DNA of 64,000 nucleotides, taken from positions 124,001 through 188,000 of IMG/VR virus record IMGVR_UViG_3300049846_000628; one strand, 5' to 3'. Shown piece after piece: positions 7,130 through 29,900 of the stretch (position 1 is its first letter; every line of letters starts with the position of its first letter). The translations under genes were made by a program, and so were the position numbers. The notes below the pieces were generated by a model. It made no database searches, was not told where the DNA came from, and was given only the letters and a program-made list of their open reading frames with translations.

Positions 7130-7318
7130 TCAGGCGTCCATCCCCATCGCATCCCGCAGGATGTTGTAGGCGTTCAGGTAGTAGTCTGCGTCAGCACCCT
7201 TACCAGCGACGCGGCAATCGACTGCCAGGCAGAGCACGGCGGTGCGGATAGTGCTCCACTGTGCCTCAGTCAGGGTGATGGAGCAGAGGTCGTTGGGGAG
7301 GACGTTGGTGCGGGTCAT
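7130..7318 (-). CDS. Early small hypothetical protein
   Basis: 62 aa; own promoter; stop inside palindrome 7118-7141. Confidence 0.75.
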   Translation of the reverse strand: MTRTNVLPNDLCSITLTEAQWSTIRTAVLCLAVDCRVAGKGADADYYLNAYNILRDAMGMDA

Positions 7319-7388
7319 CGGTCGTTTGCTTCGGTTCCCTCAGTATAGAGGCAAAAGGGAGGGGTCGTCCCCCTCCGTTGTGCCACTA

Positions 7389-7523
7389 TCAGAATTGGAT
7401 TTCTTCGGCGGTCGGCTGGGCATCGGGCATGGTATCATCCTCTGCGATCGTTTCCAGGATCTGCAGGATGCTGTCGCCGTTGCTGCCTTGGCGGAGCAGG
7501 GACATGGCAAGGTCGCGGGTCAT
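7389..7523 (-). CDS. Early small hypothetical protein (44 aa)
   Basis: Hand-translated MTRDLAMSLLRQGSNGDSILQILETIAEDD...EIQF. Confidence 0.6.
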   Translation of the reverse strand: MTRDLAMSLLRQGSNGDSILQILETIAEDDTMPDAQPTAEEIQF

Positions 7524-7581
7524 TTGAGAATCAGAGTAAAGGTTGCTGAGCAGTTTAAAGTCGTGCTCAGGACTGATAGAT

Positions 7582-7833
7582 TCAGGAGTCGAAAACGTCG
7601 CCGTTGATCTCAGCGCGGTTGATCTTAGGGTCGTCCCACTTTACACCGTCAGGGGTTTCTTTGCTGCCGCAATCATAGAATGCTTCCAGAAGTTCTTCAT
7701 AGCAGCAGATGTCATTCTCCTGAATGAAGTTGTAGATGCTTTCATCATTCTCAATCCAGAGCACCACGTTCCAGGTCTCATAATTGGTCCAACCGTTGTA
7801 GGTCTTGGTGGGAGCGGTGAGGGTGGCGGTCAT
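7582..7833 (-). CDS. Early hypothetical protein (YNGWTNYETW motif)
   Basis: YNGWTNYETWNV.LWI.NDE motif seen in many phage proteins; own promoter. Confidence 0.82.
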   Translation of the reverse strand: MTATLTAPTKTYNGWTNYETWNVVLWIENDESIYNFIQENDICCYEELLEAFYDCGSKETPDGVKWDDPKINRAEINGDVFDS

Positions 7834-7905
7834 TGGGGTTCGGTTCGGAACTTGTTTAGTATAGGGGGCGGGAGGTGCCCCCTGGTGGGTCAGTGTGCCA
7901 GTGCC

Positions 7906-8106
7906 TCAGGCGGCACAAGCGGCAGGGGTCAGGGTGACTTCTACGCTACCGTCGATCGCCAGCAGCGCCGCGTCGATGGCATCCAGGCGGGCTTCCACAA
8001 TGGAAGGCGTGAAGTGCTCAGGATGCTTCACTGCCAGACTCAGCAGCTCACCCTTCCAGGAGATCAGGGCAGTGCGGACGGTGGCGGTGGGGAGGGTCGC
8101 GGTCAT
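7906..8106 (-). CDS. Early small hypothetical protein
   Basis: 66 aa; own promoter; stop inside palindrome 7894-7917. Confidence 0.72.
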   Translation of the reverse strand: MTATLPTATVRTALISWKGELLSLAVKHPEHFTPSIVEARLDAIDAALLAIDGSVEVTLTPAACAA

Positions 8107-8139
8107 CGGGGTCGTTTGATCTGAGAGTATTCTACAGGG

Positions 8140-8310
8140 TCAGCGGGTCTGCCCGCAGTAGGAAGGGGACACTTTACAGAGTGCCTCTGCCTGCCGCTCC
8201 TGGTGCGCGTTGATGGTAGCGACTGCCTCCAGTGCCCAGGCACCTGCCACAATGCTCACCATGGCGAAGCACATAATGGCGAGAGAGTTCTGAAAGGAAC
8301 GTTCGGTCAT
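8140..8310 (-). CDS. Early small membrane protein (56 aa)
   Basis: Hand-translated MTERSFQNSLAIMCFAMVSIVAGAWALEAV..., one hydrophobic segment; own promoter. Confidence 0.6.
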   Translation of the reverse strand: MTERSFQNSLAIMCFAMVSIVAGAWALEAVATINAHQERQAEALCKVSPSYCGQTR

Positions 8311-8345
8311 CGGTTCGGTTCGGTTGATGGAATCAGTCTACAGGG

Positions 8346-8513
8346 TCAACGGGAGATGAGGTCGCCTGCAGTGTACAGTGCCTCAGCTGTCACACTGCGA
8401 ATCGGTTGCATCGGACCCCAGAACGTGTAGAGCAGGGCACCGCCGATCAGGAGTTTAATCATGGTAGCACGGTGAAACTCAGGAGAGCGGGAGCGGGTCA
8501 GGGAGCGCATCAT
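8346..8513 (-). CDS. Early small membrane protein (55 aa)
   Basis: Hand-translated MMRSLTRSRSPEFHRATMIKLLIGGALLYTFWG...; ATGA overlap with upstream ORF. Confidence 0.55.
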   Translation of the reverse strand: MMRSLTRSRSPEFHRATMIKLLIGGALLYTFWGPMQPIRSVTAEALYTAGDLISR

Positions 8514-8671
8514 CGCTGCAGTTGGGCAAGGGAGGAAGGGGCGATGTGGGAGGGGGAACCACAGGAGCGGTAGAAGTCTACCATGCGGTCTGCTTCCTCT
8601 TTAGTGGTGAACCACTGCGAGCGCCACTCACAGGCATTGTAGGGGGTCTGGTAGCGGACTTCGAAGCGCAT
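8510..8671 (-). CDS. Early small hypothetical protein (53 aa)
   Basis: Hand-translated MRFEVRYQTPYNACEWRSQWFTTKEEADRMVDFYRSCGSP...; own promoter. Confidence 0.7.
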   Translation of the reverse strand: MRFEVRYQTPYNACEWRSQWFTTKEEADRMVDFYRSCGSPSHIAPSSLAQLQR

Positions 8672-8739
8672 CGGTGTCGTTTGCTGATGGAATCAGTATA
8701 AGGGGCGGGAGGTGCCCCCAGAGAGGTTAGGTTGACGGT

Positions 8740-9495
8740 TCAGTAACTGTCACAACGGGCATTGACTGCCTCCAGAAGTTTTGCCACCTTATCTTGTTGC
8801 AGTTTGAATACAACGGAAGAGTTTTTGTTTGCTTTACTCAGTCCCAGAAATGCCTTAATTCCGTTGTTACTAGTAACGCGAATTCGCAGACCACAATCAT
8901 ACTCCTTCACGCCATCAGTGAACAACAGTCGGCGGGAACCTTTTGCGCGACCTTTGAGAAAAGGAGTGTAACCCTGTTGAATGTAACCAACTGCAGGATG
9001 TTGGTCTGCTTTGTAAGTATGAAGGTTCTTTGCTACAGTATCATTCACAGCGACCATCATTTCGCTGTTAGCATCAATCATCTGAGTTTGAATGAATGAT
9101 GCTAACTGTTCGGCAGTGAAAGAATCAAGAACACCGCTGCACAGATCATTAAAGTCTTTGCGAACTTGCTTCACAAAAGAAACAGCGGAACGCTGAGACT
9201 TGGGCAGTTGGCGGTATTCTTTGATCTGCTCAAGAAAATGGGTGAAAGTATCACCAACTACATCAGAAATCTTAGTTGTGTGAATCCAATCGAACGAACC
9301 ATTCTTTACACCTTGCTTGTGTTTGATGGTCCACTTGATGTTACGCTCAGGATCAAACGCATCCGCTTTGTTCTTCGTTCCACCTTGCAGATAAATGGAG
9401 AGAGAAGCAAGGTCAAAAAAGATTAGAAGATTCTTTGTATCTTCTTCATTCTTGACGCCTTCATAATGAACGCGCCCAGTGTTGTCAAAAGTCAT
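8740..9495 (-). CDS. Hypothetical protein, possible PD-(D/E)xK restriction-like nuclease
   Basis: 251 aa; AGGAG RBS; E...KAD...TIK spacing weakly resembles type II REase active sites. Confidence 0.45.
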   Translation of the reverse strand: MTFDNTGRVHYEGVKNEEDTKNLLIFFDLASLSIYLQGGTKNKADAFDPERNIKWTIKHKQGVKNGSFDWIHTTKISDVVGDTFTHFLEQIKEYRQLPKSQRSAVSFVKQVRKDFNDLCSGVLDSFTAEQLASFIQTQMIDANSEMMVAVNDTVAKNLHTYKADQHPAVGYIQQGYTPFLKGRAKGSRRLLFTDGVKEYDCGLRIRVTSNNGIKAFLGLSKANKNSSVVFKLQQDKVAKLLEAVNARCDSY

Positions 9496-9673
9496 TTAAT
9501 TCTCCTGTGGAATTCCACTAGATGATTTGTGCTCCGTCTTTATGGGGCGCGGAACGTTCCCCTGATGAACACAGAATAGAACGAAACAGGGGGCAGCGCA
9601 AGGGGTTGTGGACGGTTCGGGAAGTGGCACAGGATGCCCTGCTGGGGGCATCTGGGGGCTCTATACTAAGGGC

Positions 9674-9790
9674 ACAAGCGAAGGAGGGGCGGGGTAGCCC
9701 TTAAGACGAAAAAGGTCGCCACTGGGGCAGCTTTGAAATAGTAGAGTGGAAAGTATAAAAAAAGGGAGGCAATCGCCCCCCGATTCTTTA
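9674..9790 (+). ncRNA. Candidate small RNA from bidirectional palindrome promoter
   Basis: Plus-strand TATACT (9662-9667) 31 bp from palindrome 9608-9631; no credible ORF; several short stems; ends at a hairpin. Confidence 0.55.
9757..9790. terminator. Intrinsic terminator, probably bidirectional
   Basis: GGGAGGC-AATC-GCCCCCC hairpin with A7 on one side and TTCTTT on the other. Confidence 0.7.
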
Positions 9791-10135
9791 TGCGAACATA
9801 AAACCATTGCGGAACTCATACTCATTGTAGACAGGAGAAGTTCCTGCCTGTCCAACGAACTTGTGAACGAACCAATTCCAGTTCCGCTGGAATACACATT
9901 CACCACCACATCCGTGATCGTGAAGAATAGCATTCAGGCGGGACTTGGTAGTGTTAGACTGATACCCACCGTCAAAGATTTGCACGAAGTCATCACCAAC
10001 CGTGGCGATGTGATTGCCGTAAAGATACACTTTGGATTCGTTAGTTTCAGGATCGAAAGTAACTTTAGTGTTATCTTTCTGCCAGTTCTGATTGTTCAGA
10101 ATGGCGGCGTTCATTTCGCGTTCAATCTTACGCAT
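9788..10135 (-). CDS. Early hypothetical protein
   Basis: MRKIEREMNAAI...VYLYGNHIA...TTKSRLNAIL, recognisable cyanophage early-region family. Confidence 0.85.
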   Translation of the reverse strand: MRKIEREMNAAILNNQNWQKDNTKVTFDPETNESKVYLYGNHIATVGDDFVQIFDGGYQSNTTKSRLNAILHDHGCGGECVFQRNWNWFVHKFVGQAGTSPVYNEYEFRNGFMFA

Positions 10136-10209
10136 TGGGTGAATCCCTCAGGAACAAACGTAGTATGGCGTGGATTGGGGGCAATTGCAACCCCCTGTGT
10201 GCCAGTTCT

Positions 10210-11109
10210 TCAGGCGGCACACTGGAAGCGACCGCTGTTGAAGTTGTGATAGCTGAACACCTCACGATTCACCAGTTTAAACATACCAAACTCATTGGTC
10301 AGAACGTAACCCTCAGCATCAATACGATTACCGTTCACGTATGCTGCAGGACCAGAATTGCGGCACAGGAACAAACAATCATCCTTGATGCTCTTTACCA
10401 ATGCCCACAGACGAATCAGGTTAGGGTCACAATCAAACGTGTCATCCTCACTGATAGGACGACCCTCACGAATGATAGAGTTGATTTGCTGCTTAATCTT
10501 TGCCGCTTGCTTATCAGTTACGAACTCACAAGCAGTAGACATTTGACGGGCAAAGTCGCAGACTTCTTTTACATCAGCGAACGATTCTTGACCGTGCAGA
10601 ATGTAAGCTTCAGGACGAACAAACTTCACATAAGGAGTATCGGTGATAGTAAAGTTCATCGGATACGCTACAGCATCACGCAGATCATTCTCTGCAATGT
10701 AGTAAGTGTGAGGTGCAATGATGATCTCTTCAGATACTACATCACCGAACTTGTAAGTGATAGTATTGGGGGTGTATTCAGTTTCACCACCAAACCCGAT
10801 AAAATCACCTTGAATAATACCATTCACGCGAGGCAGATAATCAAAGCAAGCGTGAAGAATTTGGGCAACTTCGCCCTGATAGTGTTGATCAATCTCCTGG
10901 TGATTGTGGGCGATACGAATCTTTTTCTTGTTAAAGACTGCCTTAGTTCCTACAAAGAACTCACCGCAGGCAGGGTCGATTCCCCATACGATTGCAGGAG
11001 CTCCGTCAATCTTAACGCTGAGAGATCCAGCAGCAGTGAACCAATCAAGACACGAAAGATCACCCGTGAGGATGGTATCTTCGGGGTGCTCAAGGTGGAG
11101 GTTTTGCAT
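10210..11109 (-). CDS. DUF6267-like protein with ligase/nucleotidyltransferase motifs
   Basis: NLHLEHPED, SVKIDGAPAIVWG (KxDG), IQGDF, EGYV, KLVNR; start reassigned to MQNLHL. Confidence 0.65.
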   Translation of the reverse strand: MQNLHLEHPEDTILTGDLSCLDWFTAAGSLSVKIDGAPAIVWGIDPACGEFFVGTKAVFNKKKIRIAHNHQEIDQHYQGEVAQILHACFDYLPRVNGIIQGDFIGFGGETEYTPNTITYKFGDVVSEEIIIAPHTYYIAENDLRDAVAYPMNFTITDTPYVKFVRPEAYILHGQESFADVKEVCDFARQMSTACEFVTDKQAAKIKQQINSIIREGRPISEDDTFDCDPNLIRLWALVKSIKDDCLFLCRNSGPAAYVNGNRIDAEGYVLTNEFGMFKLVNREVFSYHNFNSGRFQCAA

Positions 11110-11178
11110 TGCGTTTGTTTTGATGCTCTTAGTATTGCACGAATCAGGGGGCAGCACAAGGGGTCTTGTGCCAGTTCT

Positions 11179-12605
11179 TCAGGTGTCCTCAGAGTGAAGA
11201 ATGTCTAGCATTTGCTGGTGATAGTTGTCAGCATCACGAACCACATTTGCTGCCTCAGATACATCTTCAATTTCATACTGTGTCATCTCCAGAGAGTGAA
11301 TCACATTGGAGAGAAGATCAGTCAGTGCCTCAATCTTTTGTGCGTCAGTCATACATTCTCATCTCCCATATCAAGAGAACAATTGCTGTAACCTTCATCG
11401 TATCCCCTGTCATAACCTTCATCATACATTGCTCGGGCAAAGTTTAAGATTTGTAGAGTATCTGCCTTCCAACAAATATCCTCCCACTTTTCAAAAGTTA
11501 GATAATTTTCAGCAAGTTGTAGGATTTGTTCTTCAGTCATCATCAAACCTCTTCACGCATTTTGAGAAGTGCTCTACGAAGTTCGCCACCTTCATAAGCA
11601 AGAAGACCTGTAGTTTCAATCATATTATACCATCCTTCATCTTGATGATACTCAATCAGGGCAATTAGAGCGTCAATTTGTGTGGTTGTCAGAGTGGTTT
11701 TTTTGTCAGTCATTTGAGTGCGTTTTGTCCGATTGTGTGCTGAACCATTCTCACTGCCATACGAAAGTTTCCAAAGTCCATAGTTTTGTCTTCTTCACAA
11801 AAATCCTCAAAAATCTTTTTGATTTGTTCGTCAGTGATTTGTGCGTTAGTCATCAGGGGTGCCTCTCAACTGAAACTAAGATAACAGGGGGTCACGGTCT
11901 CCCGCAACCCCCCGTGTGCCACTAGGTCAACTGTCACCCTCCAGCAGTTCGGGATAGTATTGATTAACCTCTTCGGTCAATTCTTCGTCCGAATACTTAT
12001 CATAACCCTCCATCAGATAATCATAACAGAGACAAGTCATAGTTTTGAGATCCATGTCATCCAGCATTTGCTGAACCATTTGATCTTGAAGGTCTTTGCG
12101 GTTCATTTCAGGAAGTGTAAAGTGCGTGATGATACTGTTGCTGAAGACGGGAAAGAATGTCAGTCCAGAACTCTACATCCTCATCGTCATTGTACTGATT
12201 GTTTTCTTCAACCAAACGAATCAGATTGTTGAGATCGTCAGCAGTGAGATAGTTCATCAGTAATCGTAGTTTGCGTTCAGGTACTCATTCACATCGAACT
12301 TCTCATCATCACGAAGTTCGGGAATGTCCATGTCAAAGATCTCACCAGGAGCATCCTGAATCTCAGACCACATCTCATCAAACATTGGTGAATCCCTCAG
12401 GAACGAATGTAATGTAGAACGGATTGGGGGGCATTGCAACCCCCCTTGTACCAGTTACTCAAGCGGCACAAGCAACGAATTCTTGAATATAATAATCCAA
12501 GGGCAATTCAAGGCGGTTAGCCTCACTTTCCCATTCTGCCCATTCTTGCTCCGAAGCATCATTAATGAAGTCTTCGAAAGTATACTCAAAAGCAGGACCG
12601 CACAT
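11179..12605 (-). other. Run of small early ORFs (e.g. 11179-11352, 11349-11546, ORF ending 11927, 12257-12385, 12459-12605)
   Basis: Tightly packed, mostly acidic ORFs with overlapping start/stop codons, punctuated by palindrome promoters. Confidence 0.7.
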
Positions 12606-12765
12606 AATCTTTTCGGGGTCAATTGCGACGACTTGAGTAACATAACCGATATCCGCCCCCAGCACAAGGGGGTATGTGCCAGTTTCAGAACTGTCCCATA
12701 TAACGACACTGTTATATCGTTTTATAATGATATAACGAGAGTCCAGTTATTCAAGTGTCACATTA

Positions 12766-12951
12766 TCAGAAGGGATCGATTTCCTTCGTGGTAGCATACA
12801 CTTCCTCATCACCTTCGAGTTCCAGTAACTCTTTCCAGTCCATATGTTCTACATCTAGATCATCATAACACATGATGTCTAGATTAACACGTACAAGGCG
12901 TTTCTGTACTAACATGGCGTCTAGATGTGTATGTGTACTAGATTGTATCAT
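12766..12951 (-). CDS. Small acidic hypothetical protein
   Basis: ORF track; ATGA overlap with 12948-13088. Confidence 0.6.
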   Translation of the reverse strand: MIQSSTHTHLDAMLVQKRLVRVNLDIMCYDDLDVEHMDWKELLELEGDEEVYATTKEIDPF

Positions 12952-13249
12952 GCATAATGACGATACGCAAGATCTTGATAATCATGCGCGTCTCGTGCAT
13001 AGTCCTCGTCGAGATCCTGTGTATAATACTCGTCGAGATCCGCGTAATCGTTTGTGTATGTATAGTCGAGATCGTAGTCGTCGTACATAGCTCGTCGAGA
13101 TTGTGTGACTAGATGATTATAGCATGAATCTAGACTAGATGCAAGAACTAGATTTGGGGTCTAGACTAGATTATGATAATATATATGAGTTCTCGACTAG
13201 ATTTGTGTTGATATGATAATATAATGCTATTGTGATATCTCGACTAGAT
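12855..13249 (+). repeat. Cluster of about 15 same-strand C[T/G]AGAT motifs; long form CT[C/A]G[T/A]C[G/T]AGAT
   Basis: Long copies at 13005, 13029, 13091, 13130, 13161, 13192, 13239; short copies at 12855, 12879, 12921, 12938, 13067, 13109, 13148. Confidence 0.85.
12948..13088 (-). CDS. Asp/Tyr-rich peptide (46 aa)
   Basis: Hand-translated MYDDYDLDYTYTNDYADLDEYYTQDLDEDYARDAHDYQDLAYRHYA; promoter TTGCAT-N17-TATAAT at 13144-13116. Confidence 0.6.
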   Translation of the reverse strand: MYDDYDLDYTYTNDYADLDEYYTQDLDEDYARDAHDYQDLAYRHYA

Positions 13250-13292
13250 TTTATGAGAATTGTGTGCGTCTTGTGACCTTCTGCGCGGGGGG

Positions 13293-13321
13293 TTGACTTT
13301 GAGAGCTTCGTGTGTTATAAT
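13293..13321 (+). promoter_or_regulatory. Near-consensus sigma70 promoter facing the tandem array
   Basis: TTGACT-N17-TATAAT with extended -10 TG; opposite to all neighbouring genes. Confidence 0.85.
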
Positions 13322-13348
13322 GCGCTCGCTAAGCTTGCATAAGGATCA

Positions 13349-13524
13349 GACATTTATAAGGTTTTAATGGGGTCTTTATAAGGTCTTTATAAGGTCTTTA
13401 TAAGGTCTTTATAAGGTCTTTATAAGGTCTTTATAAGGTCTTTATAAGGTCTTTATAAGGTCTTTATAAGGTTTTAATGGGGTTTTTATAAGGTTTTAAT
13501 GGGGTTTTAATGAGGTATTAAACA
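13349..13524. repeat. 11-bp tandem array
   Basis: Nine perfect GGTCTTTATAA (13371-13469) flanked in phase by GGTTTTAATGG-type variants. Confidence 0.98.
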
Positions 13525-13626
13525 GATAATATAAGCATATAACACTAACATTATACAACCGAATAAAAAACAATAATATATTTTTTAATATATTTTTTAA
13601 TTGATTTTAACCTTTTTTATTGATTT

Positions 13627-13797
13627 TTATGCCTTTTGGAGGTTAGAAAGTTCGTGTTCTGCTCTTCTTTCTAACTCTCCGTGTACGTGTCTACGTTGTT
13701 GACGACTCGCAATCGCATTCTGTCTAGCACGGAACATTGAGAGTGAAGTTTGTGGAGCAGAAGGAATCTGTTCCATAAATTGTTGAAACGTTTTCAT
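13627..13797 (-). CDS. Small late protein with MKTFQQF N-terminus
   Basis: Hand-translated 56 aa; ATAAATA late promoter near 13824-13830; N-terminus resembles T4-like internal head protein signals. Confidence 0.65.
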   Translation of the reverse strand: MKTFQQFMEQIPSAPQTSLSMFRARQNAIASRQQRRHVHGELERRAEHELSNLQKA

Positions 13798-13905: not shown

Positions 13906-16407
13906 TCAATCGTATAGAAAGTTGCGATTTGTTTTGATTGTTTGTTCTTCTTGTTTTTGAGATAGATTACTTGGTAATTCATACTGATAAATGATAATTG
14001 GTTTTGAATCATTCCAATGTCTGACTACACCTGCAATGATGAATCCATTGGTAATCAAATAGGAGAGAAAGATGACCGTTCGTATGATCGCAATAGTATC
14101 AGACTCTTTATCACACTTGGATGCTTTCTCTCCTAATGCTTTTGCCCACCATCTCCATACTGTCTTATTCTTCATAGATTGATTGCCTTGTTCGGATGTA
14201 CGTTAACTCTTTCCATTGATTCGCATAACACAAGACTAATAACCTTTCATTTTTATGAAGACGACAGGCTTCGTAGTTAATCTCATCTTTTGGTTTTGTT
14301 GCGACCTCGATTGTAATATACTGCTTATCAACGAAGTATATCCATCCTTCTACACCTTTAGTCCACGTTACATAATCATTTACCTTGGGAACATACATTG
14401 CTCTAATGGAGTTAGATTTGGAATCATTGCAGAATAAGGTGTTGTATCATCAATACTCACACGCTTACCCACTGTCTTACTATTGACTGGGGAGAAGTAT
14501 TCTTTTGTTTTTGAATTGTAGAATCCCCAGATACAACGAACATCCCCACCAAGATTGTAGTCAAACTTACGATGATGTAGAATCCAGATTGCAACAATAT
14601 TACGTTTGAATGACTCAGTTTCATAACTATAACCTTGAGGTGCTTTGTGGGGGAATTCAGGAATCACGGACTGCACGGAGACGATTTGGATTATAACCTA
14701 AAGCAAGATATTGTTGAAGACGTGCATCACATTGCTCTTTGGTTAATTGCTTCGCATCCTCTTCAATCAATGCCCAACCATCCGTGTAAAATTCTTCAAT
14801 GCGATAGAGTTGATTCACGTTGTAAATGCCTCCAGAAGACCAGATCCAAATTCATCTACCAGTGCGAACTTTTGTGCATTGACCACTCTTTCCATAATGC
14901 GATCAGTATACCGATCATCAAAAGACTGTTCGTTAGAAAGAATCTCAAATGCTTCAGTATCAGACTCAGCAATTAGATTAATCAGACCACCGTATTCAGA
15001 AGAAGGAAACGGCACCCAGTAATCAACAATGTACAGATATTTCATCGTTTGTGTTTTAGGACTCCTTCATTTTAGATTGTTTGTGAGCATTTGTCAAGCA
15101 GCTGAGTTGTCTCTCAATCTCATACTTAATCGGCAGTAGATGAGAAGAAAAGAATCCAGCATACTCTCCATCTTGTAGCAAACTGTAGATGTTCTCAGTT
15201 TGCATTAATGCAAAATTTAACTTCATTCTCCGATCCATCATACAAACTCCTGAATATAATACTCAACCGATACATCAAGTTTTTTGGCTTGCTTCTCATA
15301 AAAACGTTTCGTGTATTGTTTTGCTTCACCCCATTGCTGATAAGAATGAATCTCCATCTCAGAGTGCTTCATAAAATCTTCAAAAGCATTCATAAATTGT
15401 TTGATGTCTTCGTCGTTCATTAGTCTACAGGGCAATGAGGATGATCACTGGATTTAACACAAGCATCATAAGACTTCATCAGTTTAGCATCACGCTCAAT
15501 TAGAAATACATTCCAACCGATCATCAATCCAAACAGAATCAAGAAAACATAAGGGAACTTCATCAGCAGGCACCTTGCATAACGTTGTACTCTTGTACCA
15601 GATCAATGTTATCACCAGTGATCAGATAATCCAGCGCCAGACGCTCATCAATCTCACGCTGAGCATCCTTTTTGCTGATGCACTTGCGGGAGATGGTATC
15701 CACACCCTTCCAAGAAAGAACCTTGAGAGTGTAGTTGGAACAATCAGCAATCGGATAGAAACCAACCAGCATCGTGCCGTCTTTGGACTGGAGAGTGGGG
15801 AAGTCAATCATTGGGGGGCATCCCGATTACCTTTGTATTATAGGTCAGAAGGACGGCACCACGTCGTTGCGGAGGACAGTTCCGGATCTGTCCATTCGCT
15901 CAAAGACCGTGTAAAGTTTGTTATACAGTGCAGGAACACTTCCATATTCCCGTGCGATTTGATATTCATCACGAAGGTCTAAGGTCTGCAATGCAGATAG
16001 AATTACACCAATTTCGTGAACATTCAGTTGTAAAGTCGTTTCAGTCATTGTTATCAGTCCCAAGAAACATTTTCAAGAAGAACACCAGGCATTACATAAG
16101 TCCAGCCAGTTCCACCAGGTTTGTAATCCCATTTGTATTCATATTTGTTATGACTATCCCAAGTCATATATCCTTTCTCTTTATCAAACCTACCCTTAAT
16201 GGTCAGAGCAAATCTGTTAGAGAAGATATTGCGAGTACGAAGCGCACCGCTCTTTTCACGAGTTTCAATCACAACACAAGTATCCTCATAGAATTCAGTA
16301 CCAGACTCAATTCCACAGGCAGTTTCATAACGAAACGGACGATAGGCATCTTGTGCAAGTGCAGGAGACGCAAGAAGGAAAAAAGAAAGAAAAATAGATT
16401 TCATCAT
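13906..16407 (-). other. Run of small hypothetical ORFs (13906-14175, 14165-14398, 14380-14676, 14815-15045, 15056-15241, 15238-15435, 15563-15811, 15845-16063, 16054-16407)
   Basis: Co-oriented, abutting ORFs from the track. Confidence 0.75.
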
Positions 16408-16443: not shown

Positions 16444-16920
16444 TTATACTGCCTGCGTCAAGCGGTTGGGGAAGAATTGTACCACTTCTGGAACTGGTAC
16501 ATTCAGTTCGTCAAACAAATACTCAACATATAAGGTTTCTTCCTGTTCCCGTGCTTCAATTTCGTGTGGTTGCATCCAATAGTCCATATCTTCCACACAT
16601 TCTTTACCATAACACATTTTTCCACGTCGGAGTCGCAGCGAACCGACCACCCACTGTCGCAGGTGCGTCAGTTCGTGCAAAAGAGTTTTTATATACAACT
16701 CATCATCCATATAGGTATTCAATTCAATCAGAAAGTGACGGGGACGATAGGTTTCACCTACAACGTCACAATATCCATAAACCTGCTCACGATTCAAACC
16801 ACGATGCACAATATCAACTTGAATCTTATGCCGTGGAAAGAAACGATTCAGAAACCAAGCGGTAACATCCTCACAGACCCGCTTGCGATAACCATATCCA
16901 GTGTGCGTAATGTAAGACAT
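16444..16920 (-). CDS. Zincin-like metallopeptidase
   Basis: TLLHELTHLRQW (HExxH) and downstream PHEIEA. Confidence 0.75.
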   Translation of the reverse strand: MSYITHTGYGYRKRVCEDVTAWFLNRFFPRHKIQVDIVHRGLNREQVYGYCDVVGETYRPRHFLIELNTYMDDELYIKTLLHELTHLRQWVVGSLRLRRGKMCYGKECVEDMDYWMQPHEIEAREQEETLYVEYLFDELNVPVPEVVQFFPNRLTQAV

Positions 16921-17425: not shown

Positions 17426-17639
17426 TGCTTGGTTGCGTATGTGCTTATTATAGCGGCACCTAGGCACCGCTCAGGAGGTCAGTAGACCAGTTCCTCATCT
17501 GGCACCCAGTAGTCATCAGAACTCATATATCCCATCCAATCTGAAGGTTCGGACCCATAGATTTCAATTTCCCGCAGTTCATCAATCAGCTCAGATAGAT
17601 CCATTGTGAGTTCCTCAGTTACTTGAATAGTATAGCAGA

Positions 17640-18080: not shown

Positions 18081-18680
18081 TTATAGGGTGTCCTGCTCCC
18101 GCTTGGATGGTGCTTGTGACAGTTTCTGAACTGCCACAATGTCCTTATATGTTTTCCTGTCCCCAGCAATAATTCCTCTAATTTTAGAAGGACAATAATT
18201 TCTTTCCTCACAAAATTTGGATAAATGATCAACTATAATTACTTCTCCAGATTGAAGTGTAATCTCATATGTTTTTCTTCTACTTTCCAACCATTTTTTA
18301 TTTTGACTTCGTTTTTTTATTCCTTCAAGATAATTTTCTCTATGAGAGTTCATAATATTATTTTCTTTCATTCTTTGTCTCAATATTTCTTTATTTTTTT
18401 GAGAGACAAGTAATCCACTATTACCTTCCCCACCATTACTCTTGTTCCTTAATATTCCAGTTCGCAAATCCTTCCTACCAAACACAGCAATCATATAGAT
18501 TTCGTGTCTAAATGCTTCTTGTTCGGTAAGATTACATTTAAGATATATTCTTTTAGTTTTATCTTTGGGAGGTTTTGTTGGTCTTCCAGTTGTATCGTTT
18601 ATTCTATCCCCCTTCCCCTTACCAATATAATAAGGAGTTCCATCTTCACGCAAGTAAGCGTAAGTGTAATAGTTATTCAT
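18081..18680 (-). CDS. GIY-YIG homing endonuclease
   Basis: YYTYAYLREDGTPYYIGKG..R..EAFRHEIYMI..GILRN; start reassigned to MNNYY behind TATAAATA. Confidence 0.88.
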   Translation of the reverse strand: MNNYYTYAYLREDGTPYYIGKGKGDRINDTTGRPTKPPKDKTKRIYLKCNLTEQEAFRHEIYMIAVFGRKDLRTGILRNKSNGGEGNSGLLVSQKNKEILRQRMKENNIMNSHRENYLEGIKKRSQNKKWLESRRKTYEITLQSGEVIIVDHLSKFCEERNYCPSKIRGIIAGDRKTYKDIVAVQKLSQAPSKREQDTL

Positions 18681-18775: not shown

Positions 18776-19756
18776 TTAGTATAGTGCCTCCACCAGCGCA
18801 TTCGACTGCTGCTGTGCCAGTTCATCAACTGTCTCCTGGGCAATGCTGATTGCGTCTGGATTCACATCCATCGTGATACAATTTCGCCCCAAACCAAAAG
18901 CGGAAATTGCTGTCGTTCCAGATCCACAGAAGGGGTCCAGCACCCATCCATCAGGAGGACAAGACGACTTTATGATACGTTCTAACAGTTTCAGAGGCTT
19001 TTGTGTAGGATATTTACGCTTATTCTGTTCACTTCTGCTGATAAAGTATACATCATCCCACAAATTCTGCACTGGGACACCTTTAGACTCGTGAGAATAG
19101 ATTTTTTTGTAAATATTGTTTGCTCCGTAGTGCAGACGACCCTGGGCGTCCAGTTCTTCCAGTTTTTCCCTTGTTATACGGAATCCATACTGAGGATTAT
19201 AACCTTTATACTCAAAACGGGCACAAGGACGACTCTTTTCACCAGTCACCTTTGCGAGAGCATAATATCCAACTTCATCTTTATTCTTGAAGCTGTTCTC
19301 AGCATACACTGGATCAAGAGATGTATATTCAACTTCAAAGTATGGTTTGCCTTTCTGCAGCACCATAATACTATCTACAATGTTACCCCAACCATTCTTG
19401 AGGTTGTTCTTTGGTCCACTACGTTTCCAAGAGATGTTAGTGTAGAAAGCATCCCTAACTTTAGGATCTACCTTAGAAAGGACTAAAGCATTACCAATAA
19501 AGTTATTGTGGGCATATAACCACCCATTCTTATTCAACTTAGCAAAACAGTTATTGATGACTTCTGCATACCAGTCAATATAGTCATCAAAGGAACTCCA
19601 ATTATCACTAAAACCTTTCTCTTGACCATCTTCCTCCTGCATTGTAAAATCCCGCTGCAATCCAAAGGGAGGGTCCATATAAATCAGATCAAATGTCTGG
19701 TCAATGGTATTGAGTTCTTCAACAGGCTTCTGAAGAATCTTAATCTCAGGCATCAC
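18776..19756 (-). CDS. N6-adenine/N4-cytosine DNA methyltransferase (beta class)
   Basis: LIYMDPPF, YPTQKPLKLLERII, VLDPFCGSGTT. Confidence 0.92.
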   Translation of the reverse strand: MMPEIKILQKPVEELNTIDQTFDLIYMDPPFGLQRDFTMQEEDGQEKGFSDNWSSFDDYIDWYAEVINNCFAKLNKNGWLYAHNNFIGNALVLSKVDPKVRDAFYTNISWKRSGPKNNLKNGWGNIVDSIMVLQKGKPYFEVEYTSLDPVYAENSFKNKDEVGYYALAKVTGEKSRPCARFEYKGYNPQYGFRITREKLEELDAQGRLHYGANNIYKKIYSHESKGVPVQNLWDDVYFISRSEQNKRKYPTQKPLKLLERIIKSSCPPDGWVLDPFCGSGTTAISAFGLGRNCITMDVNPDAISIAQETVDELAQQQSNALVEALY

Positions 19757-23974: not shown

Positions 23975-23976
23975 AC

Positions 23977-26900
23977 TTGTAACTCAGTTGAATGTCTTTC
24001 TTTTTAAGATTGTATCGGTCAATGTGCTTTTGACGATTGTGTTCGCTATCAAAATAACACTTGCGGGTTTCTTTTCCTTCTTTGTAAACCAACTTCCAAG
24101 GAAACTGATCAAAGGGAAATTCTTCAGTGTAGTCCATCAGGTAGGTTGCTCAACACGTTGAGTATACACGATATCAAAGAGTCCGTCAAGTATCTCATTG
24201 CACTGCTGATACTCGTCACTATTCAGAATAGCCTTCTCAATCTGATATCGACGAACAGCAGTGTGAATGAGTTTGTAATGTTCAGGTGTAAAGTTCATTC
24301 CGTTCCTCCATAAATTCTTTGCCCATCTTCATAACCCACTTGATATGCTGCCTGCAACCACTTGATGATTGCTCCATAATCATTTGTTTTTGCTGCAAAA
24401 TCAAAGTCATCATAGAATCTTTCAGAGCGGAATGAGTACCCTTCCATTTCTTCAAACCAATCTTCAAATTTCATTAGTCGTAAAGATTCTGCTCGTGCTG
24501 CAATCTATCTAGGTAATGATAAATCGTCTGCTCTGAATACCGAAACTCTTCAAATCGTTGCGGATTTCCTTCTTTCATTTTGTTCAGCATATTAATCCAG
24601 TCATAGTGTTTGTTCACGACCCACCCATAATGTTCATCATTCATTTTTCATAATCAGTAATTTTCCCACAATCATACCATAAAAAAGTTCACTTACCTTA
24701 TCATCGGCATTTTTCATTTGATCTTTTGTAAGACGAATTAACTCACTAATCTCAACATCAGTAAGTTTCCATTCAGTAATGTTGTGCTCGGTTACTTTCA
24801 TCATTTCAAGTGCTTTGGTTTTTCAGTATCAAATTGATAGAACTTTACATCCTTCATATCAAGACACATACGCACAGTTTCGTGCTCTCTGTGTTCTCTA
24901 TCTGTTCCTTTATATATCCCTCTGCGTTGATAAGCACAACACCAGACATTATAGTAGATTTTAGATTTATCATTCATTGACCTATCCTCAACTTGCGTTC
25001 ATCTGAAATAATGATATTGTAAGGGTCATCATAAGGATAGATGTATTCCATATACCATCCCAAAGATAAACCTTCCCAGAACTCATCATATCCCCAAGTA
25101 TCACCATCATTATAACAATCCAGACAATTCCAGAAGTTATGGAAACCCTCAAGGAAGATTTCCCATTTTGTTGGATTATCAAATCTCACGGCGTTTCATC
25201 ACTCCAATAGTAACGCAGTTTATCACCATCGGCAGAAATATTCAAGTGATAGATTTTATCATCCTCAGTATACACACCAATCCAAAGTGTGCGTTCATTC
25301 ATACTTTCCAGGTGAAACATTTGAATGTCTTGGAGTACGATTTCGTCTGGGTTTTCAGTCCATTTTCGGGACATTAGAGTTTTCTCAATTTATAAAAGTA
25401 TCATATCAGAAAGGGCATCCAAAATCAACTGCCCTTATTCCAGTTCTCAAAGTGTCTTTATGATATTCTTTTTCTTTTAGAAGTATCTATATTTCTTTTT
25501 TGTTGGTATCGTGTAAGTGCCCCTGATGTAGTTATAAACCCAGTTTCAAGACACATCCATTTTTGAGAATTAGTTATTTTTGAACCTTGTTTTCCAGCAT
25601 TTTTTCTTATATTATAAAGTTCTTCTGTTGATAAAGCAAAAAATCCAACACCTTTTTCATAAGATGTTTTTCCTCCTATTTTTCCACCAGGAAGAAAAGA
25701 ATGTTTATGAACTACCATTTTTCCTTCAAGTTCAAGAAAATCAATCAGTATTCTATCACACTCATAAAATTCTTTGAGGTATTGTGATACTTTTACATAA
25801 TCTATGTGTTTATCAATCATTAGATTAAAGAAGCAATAATTACAAGAATAAAAAATCCCCAAGGAATATTCAAACTAATGACTTCTCCCTTGTCGTTTCT
25901 ATCCGCATATGGAACAAAAAACTTGATAATGTCTAAAGTGTTCATCGGAAACTCTTCAATACTTTACGAATAAACTGAATAGAACCATAAAACTCTTGAC
26001 CATCCTGTCCACCAATTACAATCCAATCAACTTCTTCCAGAGCAAGTTTAATTCTTTCATCTCTGGTGAGGTCTTCAAATGATTTCTTTGCGAGTTCTTG
26101 TCGTGCTGCTGCATCCATAACCTTTTCAAAGTCTTCTTCGGATACTTTTGCGGTGGTTGGTTGTTCGTCAGTCATTTTGTTCCTGGTGCAAAAGGACTGC
26201 TGCTATAAGTTTCCTTTGGTGCTTTTACATCACACCAAATATTGGGTTCATGGGGTGTAGTTTTCAAAGGAATTGGAGGAGTATAAGGAACTGCGATTGG
26301 TTGAGTAAGTGGTTGAGAGAATGAGTATTGTTTGGTCTCATAAATCCATCGTTCCAGAATGTTGCAATCCCATCCATCATAATGTTTCTTACCATATTCC
26401 ACACAATCCTCACGATTGGGGAAAGCAACAACAAAAGTGTCTTTGTAATAAAGTGCGTAGATTTTCATAATGCCTCATCAATCCACACAAAGCCCAAACA
26501 AGTTTTCATAAAGAACCTCACCAAACGATTAGGTTTATCAGGCATATAATACCTGAAATATCGTTGATTACCAATCGTATAATAACCTTTATGAGTATTT
26601 CCCTGTTTGATTACAAAAGAGGTTTCAGTATAAGGACTAGTATAAGCAGTCAATCCAGTTGTTGTATAAGCAAGTTTTAGTTCAGGTGGAAAATGTCCGT
26701 GCTCCTTTGCGTATTCAAATTTCTCAAAAATCCTATCAAACTTTCGGTTGTATCTCTCCTCGGCATGTTCTCTTGACCATTTAGAGCACATTTTGAACTT
26801 CTCTATCTGAGCACCAATCTTCTCATCAAACTCTTGTTGGATTTCATCCAGAGTTTTAGGAGGTTCTGGAATATCCAAGTATGGTTTAATTACATCAAAA

Positions 26901-29900
26901 TGCTCATAATCTTTGTTGAAGTAAATAAACCCAAGCAAATAAGGAAGAATACTTTGAGATGCTCCTTTGAGTTTCTCTGGATTGAGTTTATACCCCGATG
27001 TCCCTATTTTTAGTGTTCCTTGTGGTTCAATCATCGTATTCCAGTATCAAAGAGTTTTCTCAGTTCATTATACACCAATATAATGTCGTGGTCAGTAGTC
27101 ATATGACCACGATCTTTTTCTAATTTTAGAAGATCATAAAGTTGTCGTGCTTGGTCTTCTGTGAGTGTGAGTTTATACTGCTTTTCAACTTCAATCATTT
27201 TCAATCACTCCACATAATGATATAAAGGTTCTTTGTATTTTCTCAGTAGTCGTATTGCATCTTGTGCTTCTTCAAGTGTTTGGAATATAGCATCTGAATA
27301 AAGAAAATACTTTTGGTCTTTAATACTATATCTTTGAATAAAAAAATAAGGTTTCAAAGTTTTTAAATTGAGGTCTTCTACAATTCGGTAATCATATACT
27401 TTCATTATTTCCGTGCCTCCCAATACTTACCTTCTTCACTACATTTACCATAAGTTCGTCTCATCAAATCACAAAAACGACCACCTTTGACTTTTCCAGT
27501 CACCAGATTTTCACTCAATACTGGATTGAAGCATAAGTCAAATCGGTCTCCACCACCAGTAAGATGTTCAAACCAATCTTTCTTATACCACTTACAATCT
27601 TTACAGAGCTTTAGATCAGTCACTGGGATTCTCCATAATCACAATCAAAGGACAAATACTCAATCACAGGTTTCCTCAAATAGTTACAAAGGTGCCACTG
27701 TGCTTCTTCAAATGTAGAATAATCACCATCCCTATATTCGTCTACAAATAGATTATACCAAAACAATCCAAATCTTTTGTGTTGTGGATAGTATCTGGTT
27801 GAGTGTCCGTCTGTTACTTTTTTGATGCGGTAGTTTTTAGTCATTTCAAATACCTGCGTCGGCATCAATAGTGAAGTTTGGTTTGTCTATGATGACCTCT
27901 ACACTCATACTACCCATAATCCCAGCAATCACATTCCTTACATTCTCCCTTGATTTAGCAGTATAGTATCCATTCCAGTTTGATACTGTTAGAGAATGGT
28001 TGAGTGTATCAATAATAACTGCGAGTTCGTGTGCTGTAAGTTTCATTTCAATACCTCATCAACATCAACACCATCATAATCATCAATACCAAGTTTGAAC
28101 CTTACGAAATCAGTGAGGTCAGTAGCATCCCGTTCATACACACAATACCCACCATTATTATCACTTTCTGTGTAATTGGTGAAGTAATCATCAAATACTA
28201 CCATAATAGCAAGGGCACGGGATTGGTCGTGTTCTGTGATGGTCTTATGGGGATGTGCTACAATTTTAGTGATACACTCAAAGAGTTCCTCACGAGTGTA
28301 TGAGAATGCTTTTGCTTCTGGATTGAGTTGGTAAGTCATTTCAGTTCCTCTTCTCTTTGGAGTTCATAAAACATATCATTCAAAAATGCAAGTGCGTGTT
28401 TTCCAACAAACCAAGCATCTTTATCCTCAAAGAATCTATCACCAACAGTTCTCATATCATAACCTTCTTTGGTTTCATCAAAGAAAGCAACAACATAACA
28501 TAACTCTTTGTCGTTGCTGTCCTTATACCACTTTACGAGTTCATACTTTTTGTTGAATTCACTCCAACGGAACTCTACATCACGAAACCTCACTCTTCAT
28601 CCTCCTCATAAGGAAACATTTCATCATACTCTTCGTCAGTGAGAGTAAGATACTGAACATCAGCATTCTTGTGCTCTTCGGCATACACTAACTGGTAGTG
28701 TGCGAAAGAAGAAGGGTCTGAACTAGCAAATTCTAGCAGACCATCAACAAAACAAAGGTAGTTCATTTTAGTTCTCCAAGATTCACAGGAGGTTTGATGT
28801 CCATAAGTTCATCATACAGCATCTGGGCAAACCCGTAGTGGGGTCTTGTACCAGTTTCAATACTGGTACTGGTCGCCACTGCCCACATAATATCAAGTTC
28901 TCTTTTATCAGGTAGTTTCTTCATCTTCCTCATCAGTCAGGACAGTTCCCATCGGACCCTTTTTCAATCGTGCCCAGTCTTCATCACGCTGTTTCCAGTC
29001 TTGAAACTTTTTCTCCAAGTCCTCATTCACAGTCAGGTCAAATTCATCAGCAACCTTACGCATTTCTTCAGGACTTCGCATATCATTGAAGGCAAGGGCA
29101 CAGGCACCTTTCATAATACCTTGCTCACTATGACCCATTGTGCGAGCAATCGTTCCAAAGAAACGGAACAATTGAATGCTGTTAATGTCTTCGGTAGAAA
29201 TCTCAAAAGTATAATGCTCTTCTGGAAGACTTTCATCATCATAAATTCCAGACCCACCATAGGTAGGAGTCCATTCAGCGTCAAAATGCACACGAAGTTT
29301 TGCCTTGTAAGTCATTGGTTTGTTGCTTATGAGAGTATAATACCAGAAAGGGCACCTGAAATCAAGTGCCCTTGTGACGGTTCTTCAAGTGTCCTCGTCG
29401 GGTAGTTCTTCATCTAAATCCACATCAATTCCATCAGTGAGTTCTTTTATTCGTTCAAAGAAATCTTCATCTAATGGAATGAGTTTCTCTTCTCCTCTAT
29501 CAATTCTATCACACATTTCCATCAGATGTTCAAGAAACTCTTTTGGATAAGTCTCATCAAGGTTGATACTTGTCCAGAACCATTGATAACATTCTTCATA
29601 AGGGTCATCGGTTGGAAGTAGGGCATAATCTGCATAATTTCCACTGATGAGGTCTCTCCACATCTTGAAATTATTCCACATCTCACGCCACCCTGTTTGA
29701 AAGCAGTGACCAATGTAATACTCAAACCAGTTCATCTTTTTGGACATAGAACAATTCATCCCGCCAGTTTCTACCAGCAATATCAAAAGTGAAACCTACC
29801 CTACCAATAGAAAATAAGCAGGAGAACAACTTACCATATCCCATAGAGATTTGAAGATAAGGAAACTCAATCCACTTCCCATACTCACCATAATCAATTG

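Follow-up and report, generated by a model that had tools for sequence, protein, structure and literature searches.

Promoter-terminator cassettes of a freshwater T4-like cyanophage carry a palindrome resembling a host promoter element

In a freshwater T4-like cyanophage, about 20 small-gene units are punctuated by a 24-bp palindrome that can hold the stop codon of the upstream gene and that lies at a near-constant distance, most often 30 nt, before the -10 box of the next promoter. The same element precedes the Yfr2 small-RNA genes of the hosts, and natural strains differ by whole units exchanged at these modules. The palindrome is most likely an activator site of a host-dependent phage promoter class that is found widely in Kyanoviridae, though binding of the candidate host activator, PlmA, is inferred and not shown. 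The analysis was centered on a 64,000-nt stretch of the phage genome (the window), in which the genes considered here lie on the minus strand.

A sequence-only reading of the window had noted that seven ORFs stop at the same register inside the palindrome, and this observation was confirmed. TGA stops at 7130, 7906, 10210, 11179, 11927, 12459 and 29385 each occupy positions 10-12 of a 24-bp site (7118-7141, 7894-7917, 10198-10221, 11167-11190, 11915-11938, 12447-12470 and 29373-29396), with the consensus TGTGNCAGTT-N4-AACTGNCACA. The site-encoded tails are MDA, CAA, CAA, EDT, GDS, CAA and EDT. At 12459 two frames overlap, and the frame given in the sequence-only reading (tail CAA) is the one conserved in relatives. 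As had also been stated, copies at 8371-8394 and 17483-17506 carry the same TGA out of frame. Only 8.6% of the TGA triplets on this strand end an ATG-ORF of 40 aa or more, while seven of the 11 site copies with TGA at positions 10-12 do so (P = 8e-6). The 20-mer core had 0 expected matches in shuffled sequences, and a matrix scan of the genome returned 73 hits of 12 bits or more, against 2-7 in shuffled genomes. In 68 related contigs, position 10 is the commonest stop position.

Some points of the earlier description required correction. The window holds about 21 copies of the site, not nine. The site is a true palindrome only in some copies; the arm that overlaps coding sequence is degenerate, while the promoter-proximal arm, AACTGGCACA, is conserved. 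A TGA at positions 10-12 is not intrinsic to the site but arises when the free 4-nt center begins with GA; other copies supply a stop at positions 3-5 (TGTGAC) or 14-16 (TAA).

The site is part of a composite module. Reading along the gene strand, the palindrome is followed by a spacer of 29-31 nt, which usually forms a G+C-rich hairpin (sometimes with a T-run), a -10 hexamer with no -35, a leader of about 22-26 nt, and an ATG. Among 367 unique sites in 68 non-redundant related contigs, a TAnnnT hexamer starts 29, 30 or 31 nt after the site in 22%, 41% and 8% of cases, respectively, and almost never elsewhere. A two-hexamer σ70 scan showed no enrichment (22 found against 20.8 expected). The fixed distance, which had been missed in the sequence-only reading, places the center of the palindrome near -54 relative to the presumed start site.

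The copies in the window were examined individually; all are on the minus strand unless stated otherwise. The site at 7118-7141 holds the stop of ORF 7130..7318, with the -10 box TATACT at 7081-7086 (spacer 31 nt), and the downstream ORF 6873..7058 starts 22 nt after the -10. Only a half-site, TAGTGGCACA, is present at 7379-7402; it is followed by a strong hairpin with a T-run and by TATACT at 31 nt, and ORF 7389..7523 stops at position 12. The site at 7894-7917 holds the stop of ORF 7906..8106, with TATACT at 7858-7863 and ORF 7582..7833 (DUF7249) downstream. The site at 8371-8394 lies inside the 3' end of ORF 8346..8513 and is followed at 30 nt by TAGACT; a TTGACC -35 is also present. The site at 8731-8754 holds the stop of the 251-aa ORF 8740..9495 at position 13, with TATACT at 30 nt and ORF 8510..8671 downstream. 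The site at 9608-9631 is bidirectional: on the minus strand TATTCT lies at 29 nt and leads to ORF 8740..9495, while on the plus strand TATACT lies at 30 nt and leads into a conserved non-coding stretch at 9672-9795. The site at 10198-10221 holds the stop of the DUF6267 gene 10210..11157, with CATACT at 30 nt and gene 9788..10135 (Kyano_Gp96) downstream. The whole module here, from palindrome to start codon (10138-10221), is 81% identical to the module at 12387-12470, although the flanking ORFs are unrelated. The site at 11167-11190 holds the stop of the 57-aa ORF 11179..11352, with AATACT at 30 nt and the DUF6267 gene downstream; the ORF is 91% identical in nucleotides to S-SRM01, and that identity ends in the site. 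The site at 11915-11938 holds the stop of ORF 11927..12106 and is followed by a 14-bp hairpin and then by TATCTT. The site at 12447-12470 holds the stop of the conserved small ORF 12459..12665, whose true start is probably further in, with TACATT at 30 nt and ORF 12257..12439 downstream.

The site at 12675-12698 is intergenic, with no ORF ending in it and TATGTT at 30 nt. In tandem with it lies a weaker site, 12739-12762, 5 nt after the stop of ORF 12766..12951 and without a -10 box at 30 nt. The site at 15872-15895 has TATAAT at 29 nt. The near-perfect palindrome at 16478-16501 also has TATAAT at 29 nt, and a TTGACG -35 is present as well. At 17483-17506, the ORF stops at position 26 and TATAAT lies at 30 nt; the leader and downstream gene are homologous to a unit of S-SRM01 that is placed differently there. 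The best palindrome in the window (10-bp arms) is at 18115-18138, with TATAAT at 29 nt. The highest-scoring site, 18813-18836, has TATACT at 29 nt, and its TGA at positions 10-12 ends a 40-aa ORF, 18825..18947 (tail GDS), a possible eighth case. The degenerate site at 25436-25459 lies immediately after the stop of ORF 25458..25820 and is followed by a terminator-like hairpin and TATGAT at 30 nt; this module is 79% identical to the one at 29327-29393. The palindromic site at 28847-28870 has TATGAT at 30 nt. The site at 29373-29396 holds the stop of ORF 29385..29759 and is followed by an 11-bp hairpin with a T-run and by TATTAT at 30 nt. A weak site at 32830-32853 is followed by a hairpin and TATAAT at about 27 nt.

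The possibility that the palindrome acts as RNA, as a 3' hairpin that stabilizes the upstream transcript, marks a processing site, or couples termination of translation at the embedded stop to the terminator hairpin that follows, was considered. The site is transcribed as the 3' end of the upstream mRNA, some copies fold at -9 to -12 kcal/mol, and a ribosome stopping at positions 10-12 would cover the right arm. However, eight of the 21 copies fold at -0.8 kcal/mol or weaker, five of them not at all, because the coding arm is degenerate. The conserved arm is the promoter-proximal one, the spacing constraint is to the -10 box and not to the stop codon, and in host yfr2 genes the element lies upstream of the transcribed region. 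We consider this reading very unlikely.

To determine where else the element occurs, phage and host genomes were scanned. In phages, it was found in P-SSM2 (7 sites in 12.9 kb), Bellamy, S-T4, S-SRM01 and S-SKS1. An exact-pattern scan of 185,579 genomes returned 37 loci, nine of them cyanobacterial. The same palindrome lies at the same distance upstream of Yfr2/Cyano-1 sRNA genes across cyanobacteria. In Nodularia, Anabaena and Cyanothece, it is followed by exactly 30 nt, a -10 box and the Rfam family Cyano-1 (RF01701). Out of 34 Cyano-1 promoters across the phylum, 18 match the phage matrix at 6 bits or more, and 15 of these lie at -63 to -65; the background rate is 0.0004 per position. Out of 30 promoters in the picocyanobacterial family, 14 match, 13 of them at -59 to -64. 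The palindrome is built from the half-sites (GTGACAGTT / AACTGTCAC) of CGRE1, the element that the host PlmA-type GntR activator PMM1637 was shown to bind and through which it activates (PMC6191309); CGRE1 copies read from the picocyanobacterial loci are AACTGTCAC-N-GTGACAGTT. The published CGRE1 has the half-sites in the opposite order (tail-to-tail, with a 1-2 nt gap), its authors thought it restricted to marine picocyanobacteria, and binding of PlmA to the head-to-head N4 arrangement is an inference from sequence alone. The palindrome was not enriched genome-wide in five small cyanobacterial genomes (0-3 hits against 0-1 for the control), so any host regulon is small. The match to a host promoter element had also been missed in the sequence-only reading, and the primary role of the palindrome is therefore most likely transcriptional.

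Alternatively, the site could be bound by a phage-encoded protein or by a host factor other than PlmA, with the resemblance to yfr2 promoters reflecting capture of a host promoter or convergence. The different half-site arrangement, and the fact that most phage ORFs in the region have no known function, leave room for this view. On the other hand, the phage has no GntR-family gene, and the element is shared by phages of Prochlorococcus, marine Synechococcus and freshwater Synechococcus, and by host yfr2 promoters across the phylum at the same position. This points to a factor universal in cyanobacteria, as PlmA is reported to be (PMC6191309). We regard the alternative as unlikely.

Comparison with close relatives revealed that units bounded by the modules are gained, lost and reordered, as had been proposed. 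An 837-bp unit at 7865-8701, which holds four small ORFs (7906..8106, 8140..8310, 8346..8513 and 8510..8671) and one palindrome, is absent from near-identical strains: the joint 7864->8702 was observed in two independent metagenomes, in a 3796-nt and a 1338-nt contig, and a further related contig, L028, has the joined order. The unit is bounded by two module copies (repeat 7858-7924 / 8695-8761) that share 18 identical nt in the spacer, where the crossover lies. Metatranscriptome contigs were uninformative on expression from the phage sites. Cassettes are permuted in related contigs L003 and L028, and in another, L002, a 61-nt regulatory piece sits between different ORFs. At least 16 different gene families follow the DUF6267 gene across the palindrome. 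The same downstream neighbor is kept in 23% of pairs across palindrome junctions, against 49% across coupled junctions and 43% across other junctions. The palindrome variant tracks the upstream gene family, while the leader tracks the downstream one. The ORF calls used for the statistics came from a simple greedy procedure that mis-called at least one gene.

Random placement of breakpoints relative to the palindrome had been named beforehand as an outcome that would count against shuffling, and it was not observed: 17 of 30 joint ends fall in modules, which cover 17.6% of the stretch (P = 1.7e-6), and 11 of the 17 lie in the spacer. It remains possible that the palindrome is merely a promoter element that ORFs happen to overlap, that rearrangements arise by illegitimate recombination anywhere, and that only those with intergenic breakpoints survive, so that the modules have no special role in shuffling. 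Such survivorship bias is unavoidable when diverged genomes are compared, since only viable rearrangements are seen. Gene content also varies across junctions without palindromes, for example inside the coupled operon between families 1 and 2, and the modules are therefore not the only exchange points. However, palindrome junctions are about twice as variable as the others, the crossover of the 837-bp indel lies in an identical stretch of two module copies, module copies up to 84 nt long and 81% identical flank unrelated ORFs, and regulatory pieces appear between different ORFs on both sides in relatives. Compaction alone is thus an unlikely explanation.

The sequence-only reading had compared the sites to integron attC sites as well as to the promoter stem-loop cassettes (PeSLs) of T4-type phages, and its interpretation was only partly supported. 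A stop codon inside an imperfect palindrome at the 3' end of each unit and the reordering of units among relatives agree with an integron-like system in which a site-specific recombinase excises and inserts ORF cassettes. Yet the genome, which is rated 100% complete, has no tyrosine or serine recombinase; it does have a UvsX-like RecA gene. The window also contains a nuclease gene, an HNH_3 ORF at 4652-5392, which had been missed in the sequence-only reading. Each unit has its own promoter, the site is 24 bp long and not 57-141 bp, breakpoints are spread over module offsets 24-55 rather than located at one nucleotide, and the clean 837-bp indel has 18 nt of shared identity. The distance to the -10 box and the host counterpart already explain the conservation of the palindrome. 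We conclude that the integron reading fails and is largely refuted, while the comparison with PeSLs is apt.

Based on these data, we favor, with moderate confidence, the view that the palindrome is the upstream element of a composite intergenic module used by T4-like cyanophages (Kyanoviridae) in their hyperplastic regions. The anatomy of the module, its spacing, its host counterpart, and the indels and permutations with their breakpoints were established here, whereas PlmA binding and activation, the transcription start sites and the recombination enzyme are inferred. In this view, host PlmA would bind the phage palindromes and activate the -35-less promoters, which would tie expression of the small accessory genes to host light and nitrogen status. 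Upstream ORFs run into the site because the genome is compact, and since the unconstrained positions of the site can supply a stop in each frame (TGA at 3-5, TGA at 10-12, TAA at 14-16), any gene placed upstream is closed there and followed at once by a hairpin. The module recurs about 25 times in direct orientation, and its copies would be substrates for homologous recombination by the phage UvsX-type system, with crossovers mostly in the spacer that delete, insert and permute units consisting of a -10, a leader, one or more ORFs and a palindrome.

Such shuffling has been described for PeSL elements (promoter-early stem-loop mobile regulatory cassettes) of T4-type phages (Arbiol et al. 2010, PMC2839356; Comeau et al. 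2014, PMC4122927). There too, a composite of stem-loop, promoter and leader lies in intergenic spaces of hyperplastic regions in many direct copies per genome, bounds indels, replacements and displaced ORFs between close relatives, and needs no dedicated recombinase. PeSLs, however, carry a full σ70 promoter (-35 and -10) with the stem-loop upstream of it, while here there is no -35, the hairpin lies inside the promoter, and the upstream stop codon is embedded in a palindrome at a fixed 30 nt from the -10 box. Dense PeSLs were judged absent from the cyanophage S-PM2 (PMC4503421). PmSL elements of Vibrio phage nt-1 (Mot-box, -10 and stem-loop; PMC4122927) and T4 MotA-dependent middle promoters are likewise activator-type promoters in which an upstream box replaces the -35, packaged with a stem-loop as a repeated cassette. 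The box here is a palindrome centered near -54, not a Mot box at -30, cyanomyoviruses lack MotA and AsiA (PMC2984593), and the candidate activator is a host protein. With CGRE1/PMM1637 control of yfr2 promoters in picocyanobacteria (Lambrecht et al. 2018, PMC6191309), the module shares the half-site sequence (GTGACAGTT and its complement) and the position upstream of a -10-only promoter, and in yfr2 promoters of Nostocales and Cyanothece the palindrome and its 30-nt spacing are identical to the phage form. The published CGRE1 is 21-22 nt long, whereas the phage form is 24 nt; CGRE1 was described only for host sRNA genes, and none of the papers that could be searched or read links it to phages. 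Integron cassettes resemble the phage units in that an ORF is followed by an imperfect palindrome that can contain its stop codon, and in that arrays of small unrelated ORFs vary between relatives. In the phage, there is no integrase, attI or common promoter, the site is much shorter, the units carry their own promoters, and the crossovers are homology-associated and not at a fixed nucleotide.

The window is bases 124001-188000 of a 211,201-bp genome with a G+C content of 37.7%, rated complete, of a T4-like cyanophage of the Kyanoviridae kind. It encodes Kyano_Gp96, DUF6267 and DUF7249 proteins, and its nearest isolates are Synechococcus phages S-SRM01 and S-SKS1. Close relatives are absent from the isolate-phage collection searched, the best match being a 197-bp piece of S-SRM01 at 91% identity, but near-identical DNA was found in freshwater, riverine, estuarine and drinking-water metagenomes. 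Two adjacent tRNA genes are located at 41358-41555 (minus strand), with one region 96% identical to the tRNA-Met of S-TIM5-like cyanophages, and an Rfam search of the window revealed no Cyano-1 or other sRNA apart from two tRNAs.

To verify the sequence-only reading, according to which seven ORFs stop at the same register inside a palindrome, the stop codons were examined on the gene (minus) strand. All seven TGA codons occupy positions 10-12 of a 24-bp site, and each ends an ORF: 7130..7318, 7906..8106, 10210..11157 (DUF6267), 11179..11352, 11927..12106, 12459..12665 and 29385..29759, with tails MDA, CAA, CAA, EDT, GDS, CAA and EDT, respectively. At 12459 two frames overlap, and a tblastn search against 80 related contigs showed that the frame originally proposed is the conserved one. 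Only 8.6% of the TGA triplets on this strand end an ORF of 40 aa or more, so seven of eleven TGA-bearing copies has P = 8e-6. We conclude that the observation is confirmed. Pfam gave no function for the small ORFs that end in the site. The consensus is TGTGNCAGTT-N4-AACTGNCACA; the TGA arises when the free centre begins with GA, and the arm that overlaps coding sequence is degenerate, while the promoter-proximal arm is conserved. A matrix scan revealed about 27 oriented copies in the genome, about 21 of them between window 7.1 and 32.9 kb and 6 outside the window; counting both strands, there were 73 hits, against 2-7 in shuffled genomes.

The copies are followed, 29-31 nt after the last base, by a -10-like hexamer such as TATACT or TATAAT, then by a leader of about 22-26 nt and the next ATG. 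In 367 unique sites from 68 non-redundant related contigs, a TAnnnT hexamer starts at 29, 30 or 31 nt in 22%, 41% and 8% of cases, and almost never elsewhere. The sequence of the spacer varies freely, but its length does not. The spacer usually folds into a G+C-rich hairpin (z below -1.5 in 13 of 21 copies), sometimes with a T-run, which occupies the -35 region. There is no -35 hexamer, and two-hexamer σ70 promoters were not enriched in a scan. A fixed distance with a variable spacer sequence indicates a functional constraint between the palindrome and the -10 box, which is what an upstream activator site, centred near -54 relative to a start inferred from the -10 box alone, would show. Metatranscriptome contigs of one public run (X4) gave no usable transcript ends.

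The palindrome at 9608-9631 is bidirectional. On the plus strand, a TATACT box lies 30 nt away and leads into a non-coding stretch of about 125 nt (the whole region being 9608-9795), which ends at a two-way terminator. The first 65 nt of this stretch are nearly invariant in six relatives that are otherwise 75-83% identical, making it a candidate phage sRNA with a Yfr2-type promoter, although no Rfam match and no covariation were found.

Among 240 sites in the related contigs with an ORF end nearby, 89 stops are at position 10 (86 of them TGA), 34 at position 3 (the TGA inside TGTGAC), 14 at position 11, 8 at position 13 and 14 at position 14 (TAA). The site can thus close an ORF in any of the three frames. 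The DUF6267 protein ends in ..RFQCA(S/A) inside the palindrome in about 55 of 80 relatives, while in the others it stops earlier and the palindrome follows about 35 nt later. The site therefore exists independently of the coding sequence.

To determine what the palindrome is, we looked for it in other phages and in prokaryotic genomes. P-SSM2, a Prochlorococcus phage, has seven copies in 12.9 kb, all with TATAAT at about 30 nt, and Bellamy, S-T4, S-SRM01 and S-SKS1 also carry it. In P-SSM2, the gene just upstream of DUF6267 (5493-5990 of the P-SSM2 locus L085) is annotated as containing PF06114 (ImmA/IrrE-type metallopeptidase); proteases of this kind act on transcription regulators in other systems. 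An exact-pattern scan of one genome per prokaryotic species returned 37 loci, 9 of them cyanobacterial. At least 15 of the 37 are in Acidobacteriota genomes, mostly in intergenic DNA, which suggests a related operator for an unknown regulator in that phylum. Two other matches, in short contigs binned into a Pirellulales MAG and an unclassified lake MAG (L104 450-473 and L116 1689-1712), look like cyanophage fragments and are probably binning contamination; in L104 the palindrome, spacer and -10 box are followed by a DUF6267-like start.

In Nodularia, Anabaena and Cyanothece the palindrome is followed by exactly 30 nt, a -10 box and the Rfam family Cyano-1 (RF01701), which corresponds to the Yfr2 sRNA family, as the literature search bears out. 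Out of 34 Cyano-1 genes sampled over the phylum, 18 have a match to the phage-derived matrix, 15 of these at -63 to -65, against a background of 0.0004 per position. Out of 30 genes from the picocyanobacterial family, 14 match, 13 of them at -59 to -64. No genome-wide enrichment of the palindrome was found in five small cyanobacterial genomes. Lambrecht et al. 2018 (PMC6191309) showed that yfr2 promoters of Prochlorococcus and marine Synechococcus carry a palindrome, CGRE1, which is bound by the PlmA-type GntR regulator PMM1637, an activator of transcription; PlmA homologues are universal in cyanobacteria. The CGRE1 copies read from the Cyano-1 loci are AACTGTCAC-N-GTGACAGTT. These are the same half-sites as in the phage palindrome in the opposite order, and they share the GTGACAGTT half-site at the same promoter position. 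The phage has no GntR gene of its own.

A σ54 reading of CTGGCAC was rejected because the GG-to-GC spacing is 13 nt, not 10, while for NtcA (GTA-N8-TAC), CRP (TGTGA-N6-TCACA) and cyanobacterial LexA boxes the half-site spacing does not fit. In the papers searched or read, none connects CGRE1 or PlmA with phages, though it cannot be excluded that the phage motif was drawn in the Syn9 transcriptome study of Doron et al. 2016, which may show a phage early-promoter logo; Sullivan et al. 2010 searched only for known promoter types. The best reading is that the phage modules are host-activator-dependent promoters. While the sites, their spacing and their host counterpart were read directly from sequence, binding of PlmA and activation by it are inferred for the phage, being known only for Prochlorococcus yfr2 and yfr4 promoters (PMC6191309).

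A wider view is not excluded by these data, though we consider it somewhat less likely than not. Across marine and freshwater T4-like cyanophages, the accessory and early genes of the hyperplastic regions would be transcribed from a promoter class activated by host PlmA, a partner of the PII-PipX nitrogen and energy signalling system, and the phage would read host light and nitrogen status through the same switch that drives Yfr2. The same operator-terminator-promoter module would serve as a universal linker that closes any upstream ORF in any frame and lets genes be exchanged between phages, giving one element three roles: regulation, punctuation and recombination.

How cyanomyoviruses transcribe their early and middle genes without MotA, AsiA, Alt or Mod has been described as unclear (PMC2984593). 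The present finding gives a concrete and widely conserved promoter architecture and names a candidate host activator, one directly testable with existing assays (PMC6191309). As judged from sequence, it extends the known targets of the CGRE1/PlmA-type element from a few host sRNA genes to dozens of phage promoters, and shows the element outside marine picocyanobacteria.

To monitor exchange of units between strains, contigs from four public runs were aligned with window 7000-12999. A clean joint from 7864 to 8702 appeared in a 3796-nt contig of a drinking-water run and in a 1338-nt contig of a riverine run, skipping 837 bp that hold four small ORFs. The two sides are the module copies 7858-7924 and 8695-8761, which share 18 identical nt in the spacer. 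In total, 15 joints were listed, and 17 of their 30 ends lie in palindrome modules that cover 17.6% of the stretch (P = 1.7e-6). The breakpoints lie at module offsets 0-88; 11 of the 17 lie at offsets 24-55, i.e., in the spacer, and three lie inside the palindrome. 'Go-back' joints, which might be taken for excised circles, are equally explained by different gene order in other strains.

In 68 non-redundant relatives, the gene after DUF6267 belongs to at least 16 families across the palindrome, and single-gene units such as families 6, 10 and 17 occur on either side of DUF6267. The same downstream neighbour is kept in 23% of pairs across palindrome junctions, against 49% for translationally coupled junctions and 43% for other junctions, with the reservation that the ORF calls behind these statistics were heuristic. 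The palindrome variant tracks the upstream gene family (adjusted mutual information 0.39 against 0.20), the leader tracks the downstream family (0.49 against 0.21), and the spacer lies in between. A blastn comparison of four related contigs (L002, L003, L004 and L028) with the window revealed permuted blocks whose ends fall at module positions, and a 61-nt regulatory piece (7124-7064) lying between different ORFs in L002. The mobile unit is therefore '-10, leader, ORF(s), palindrome', with exchange in the spacer. It should be noted that breakpoints seen between diverged genomes are biased towards intergenic DNA, and that gene content also changes at junctions that have no palindrome. In particular, runs of translationally coupled small ORFs at 11179-12440 and related loci (stop-start overlaps of the TGATGACTGA type, proteins starting Met-Thr-Asp/Glu) gain and lose members between relatives without any palindrome; Thr is the commonest second codon (18% of 2331 ORFs). 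This may be a second, microhomology-based exchange point.

A G+C-rich island at window 5500-9700 (about 59% against 37.7% for the genome) is made of small ORFs, three of which have canonical TTGACC-N17-TAGAAT promoters, while the others have palindrome promoters. Relatives carry similar G+C-rich units in varying order, which suggests acquisition from a high-G+C source. At the edge of the island, a 246-aa ORF at 4652-5392 (minus strand) has an HNH_3 endonuclease domain (E = 2e-9); it is a possible homing-type nuclease that could also promote local exchange. At 13100-13540, an 11-bp tandem repeat (unit CTTATAAAGAC on the gene strand, nine exact copies plus degenerate ones) is preceded by five copies of ATCTAGTC within 140 bp, and in S-SKS1 a similar GACCTTATAAGACC lies between two palindrome copies (1843-1937 of locus L082). 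It could be an iteron or origin-like region, or a regulatory region. An 82-nt direct repeat (18593-18674 and 40844-40925), 87% identical, has its copies 22 kb apart, with a second, weaker pair nearby (18443 and 40697); these are probably paralogous gene segments.

The sequence-only reading had inferred, by comparison with integron attC sites and with PeSLs, that palindrome-promoter-ORF units are gained, lost and reordered by recombination at these sites. This interpretation is partly supported: the cassette inference is largely right, but it belongs with PeSLs, and the palindrome is best explained as a host-type activator site that also serves as stop-codon punctuation. As to integrons, profile searches for tyrosine and serine recombinases (PF00589 and PF00239) returned no match in the complete genome, the site is 24 bp long rather than a 57-141 bp attC, each unit has its own -10 box in contrast to promoterless cassettes served by a common promoter, and crossovers are not confined to a fixed GTT. 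A UvsX-like RecA is present, and the pattern matches PeSL-mediated homologous shuffling (PMC2839356, PMC4122927) and not an integron. The population data document how ORFan genes are swapped in cyanophage hyperplastic regions, whereas an earlier study of S-PM2 had found PeSL-type shuffling unlikely in that cyanophage. Like PeSLs, the modules are repeated intergenic composites of stem-loop and promoter, concentrated in hyperplastic regions between small ORFs, and they bound indels, replacements and displacements between close relatives; unlike PeSLs, which carry an early σ70 promoter with both -35 and -10 hexamers and the stem-loop just upstream, they have only a -10 box, with the hairpin in place of the -35. 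With respect to CGRE1, the half-sites are identical and their position upstream of a -10-only promoter matches that in host yfr2 promoters, while their arrangement differs from the published CGRE1 but equals the form found in yfr2 promoters of Nostocales and Cyanothece.
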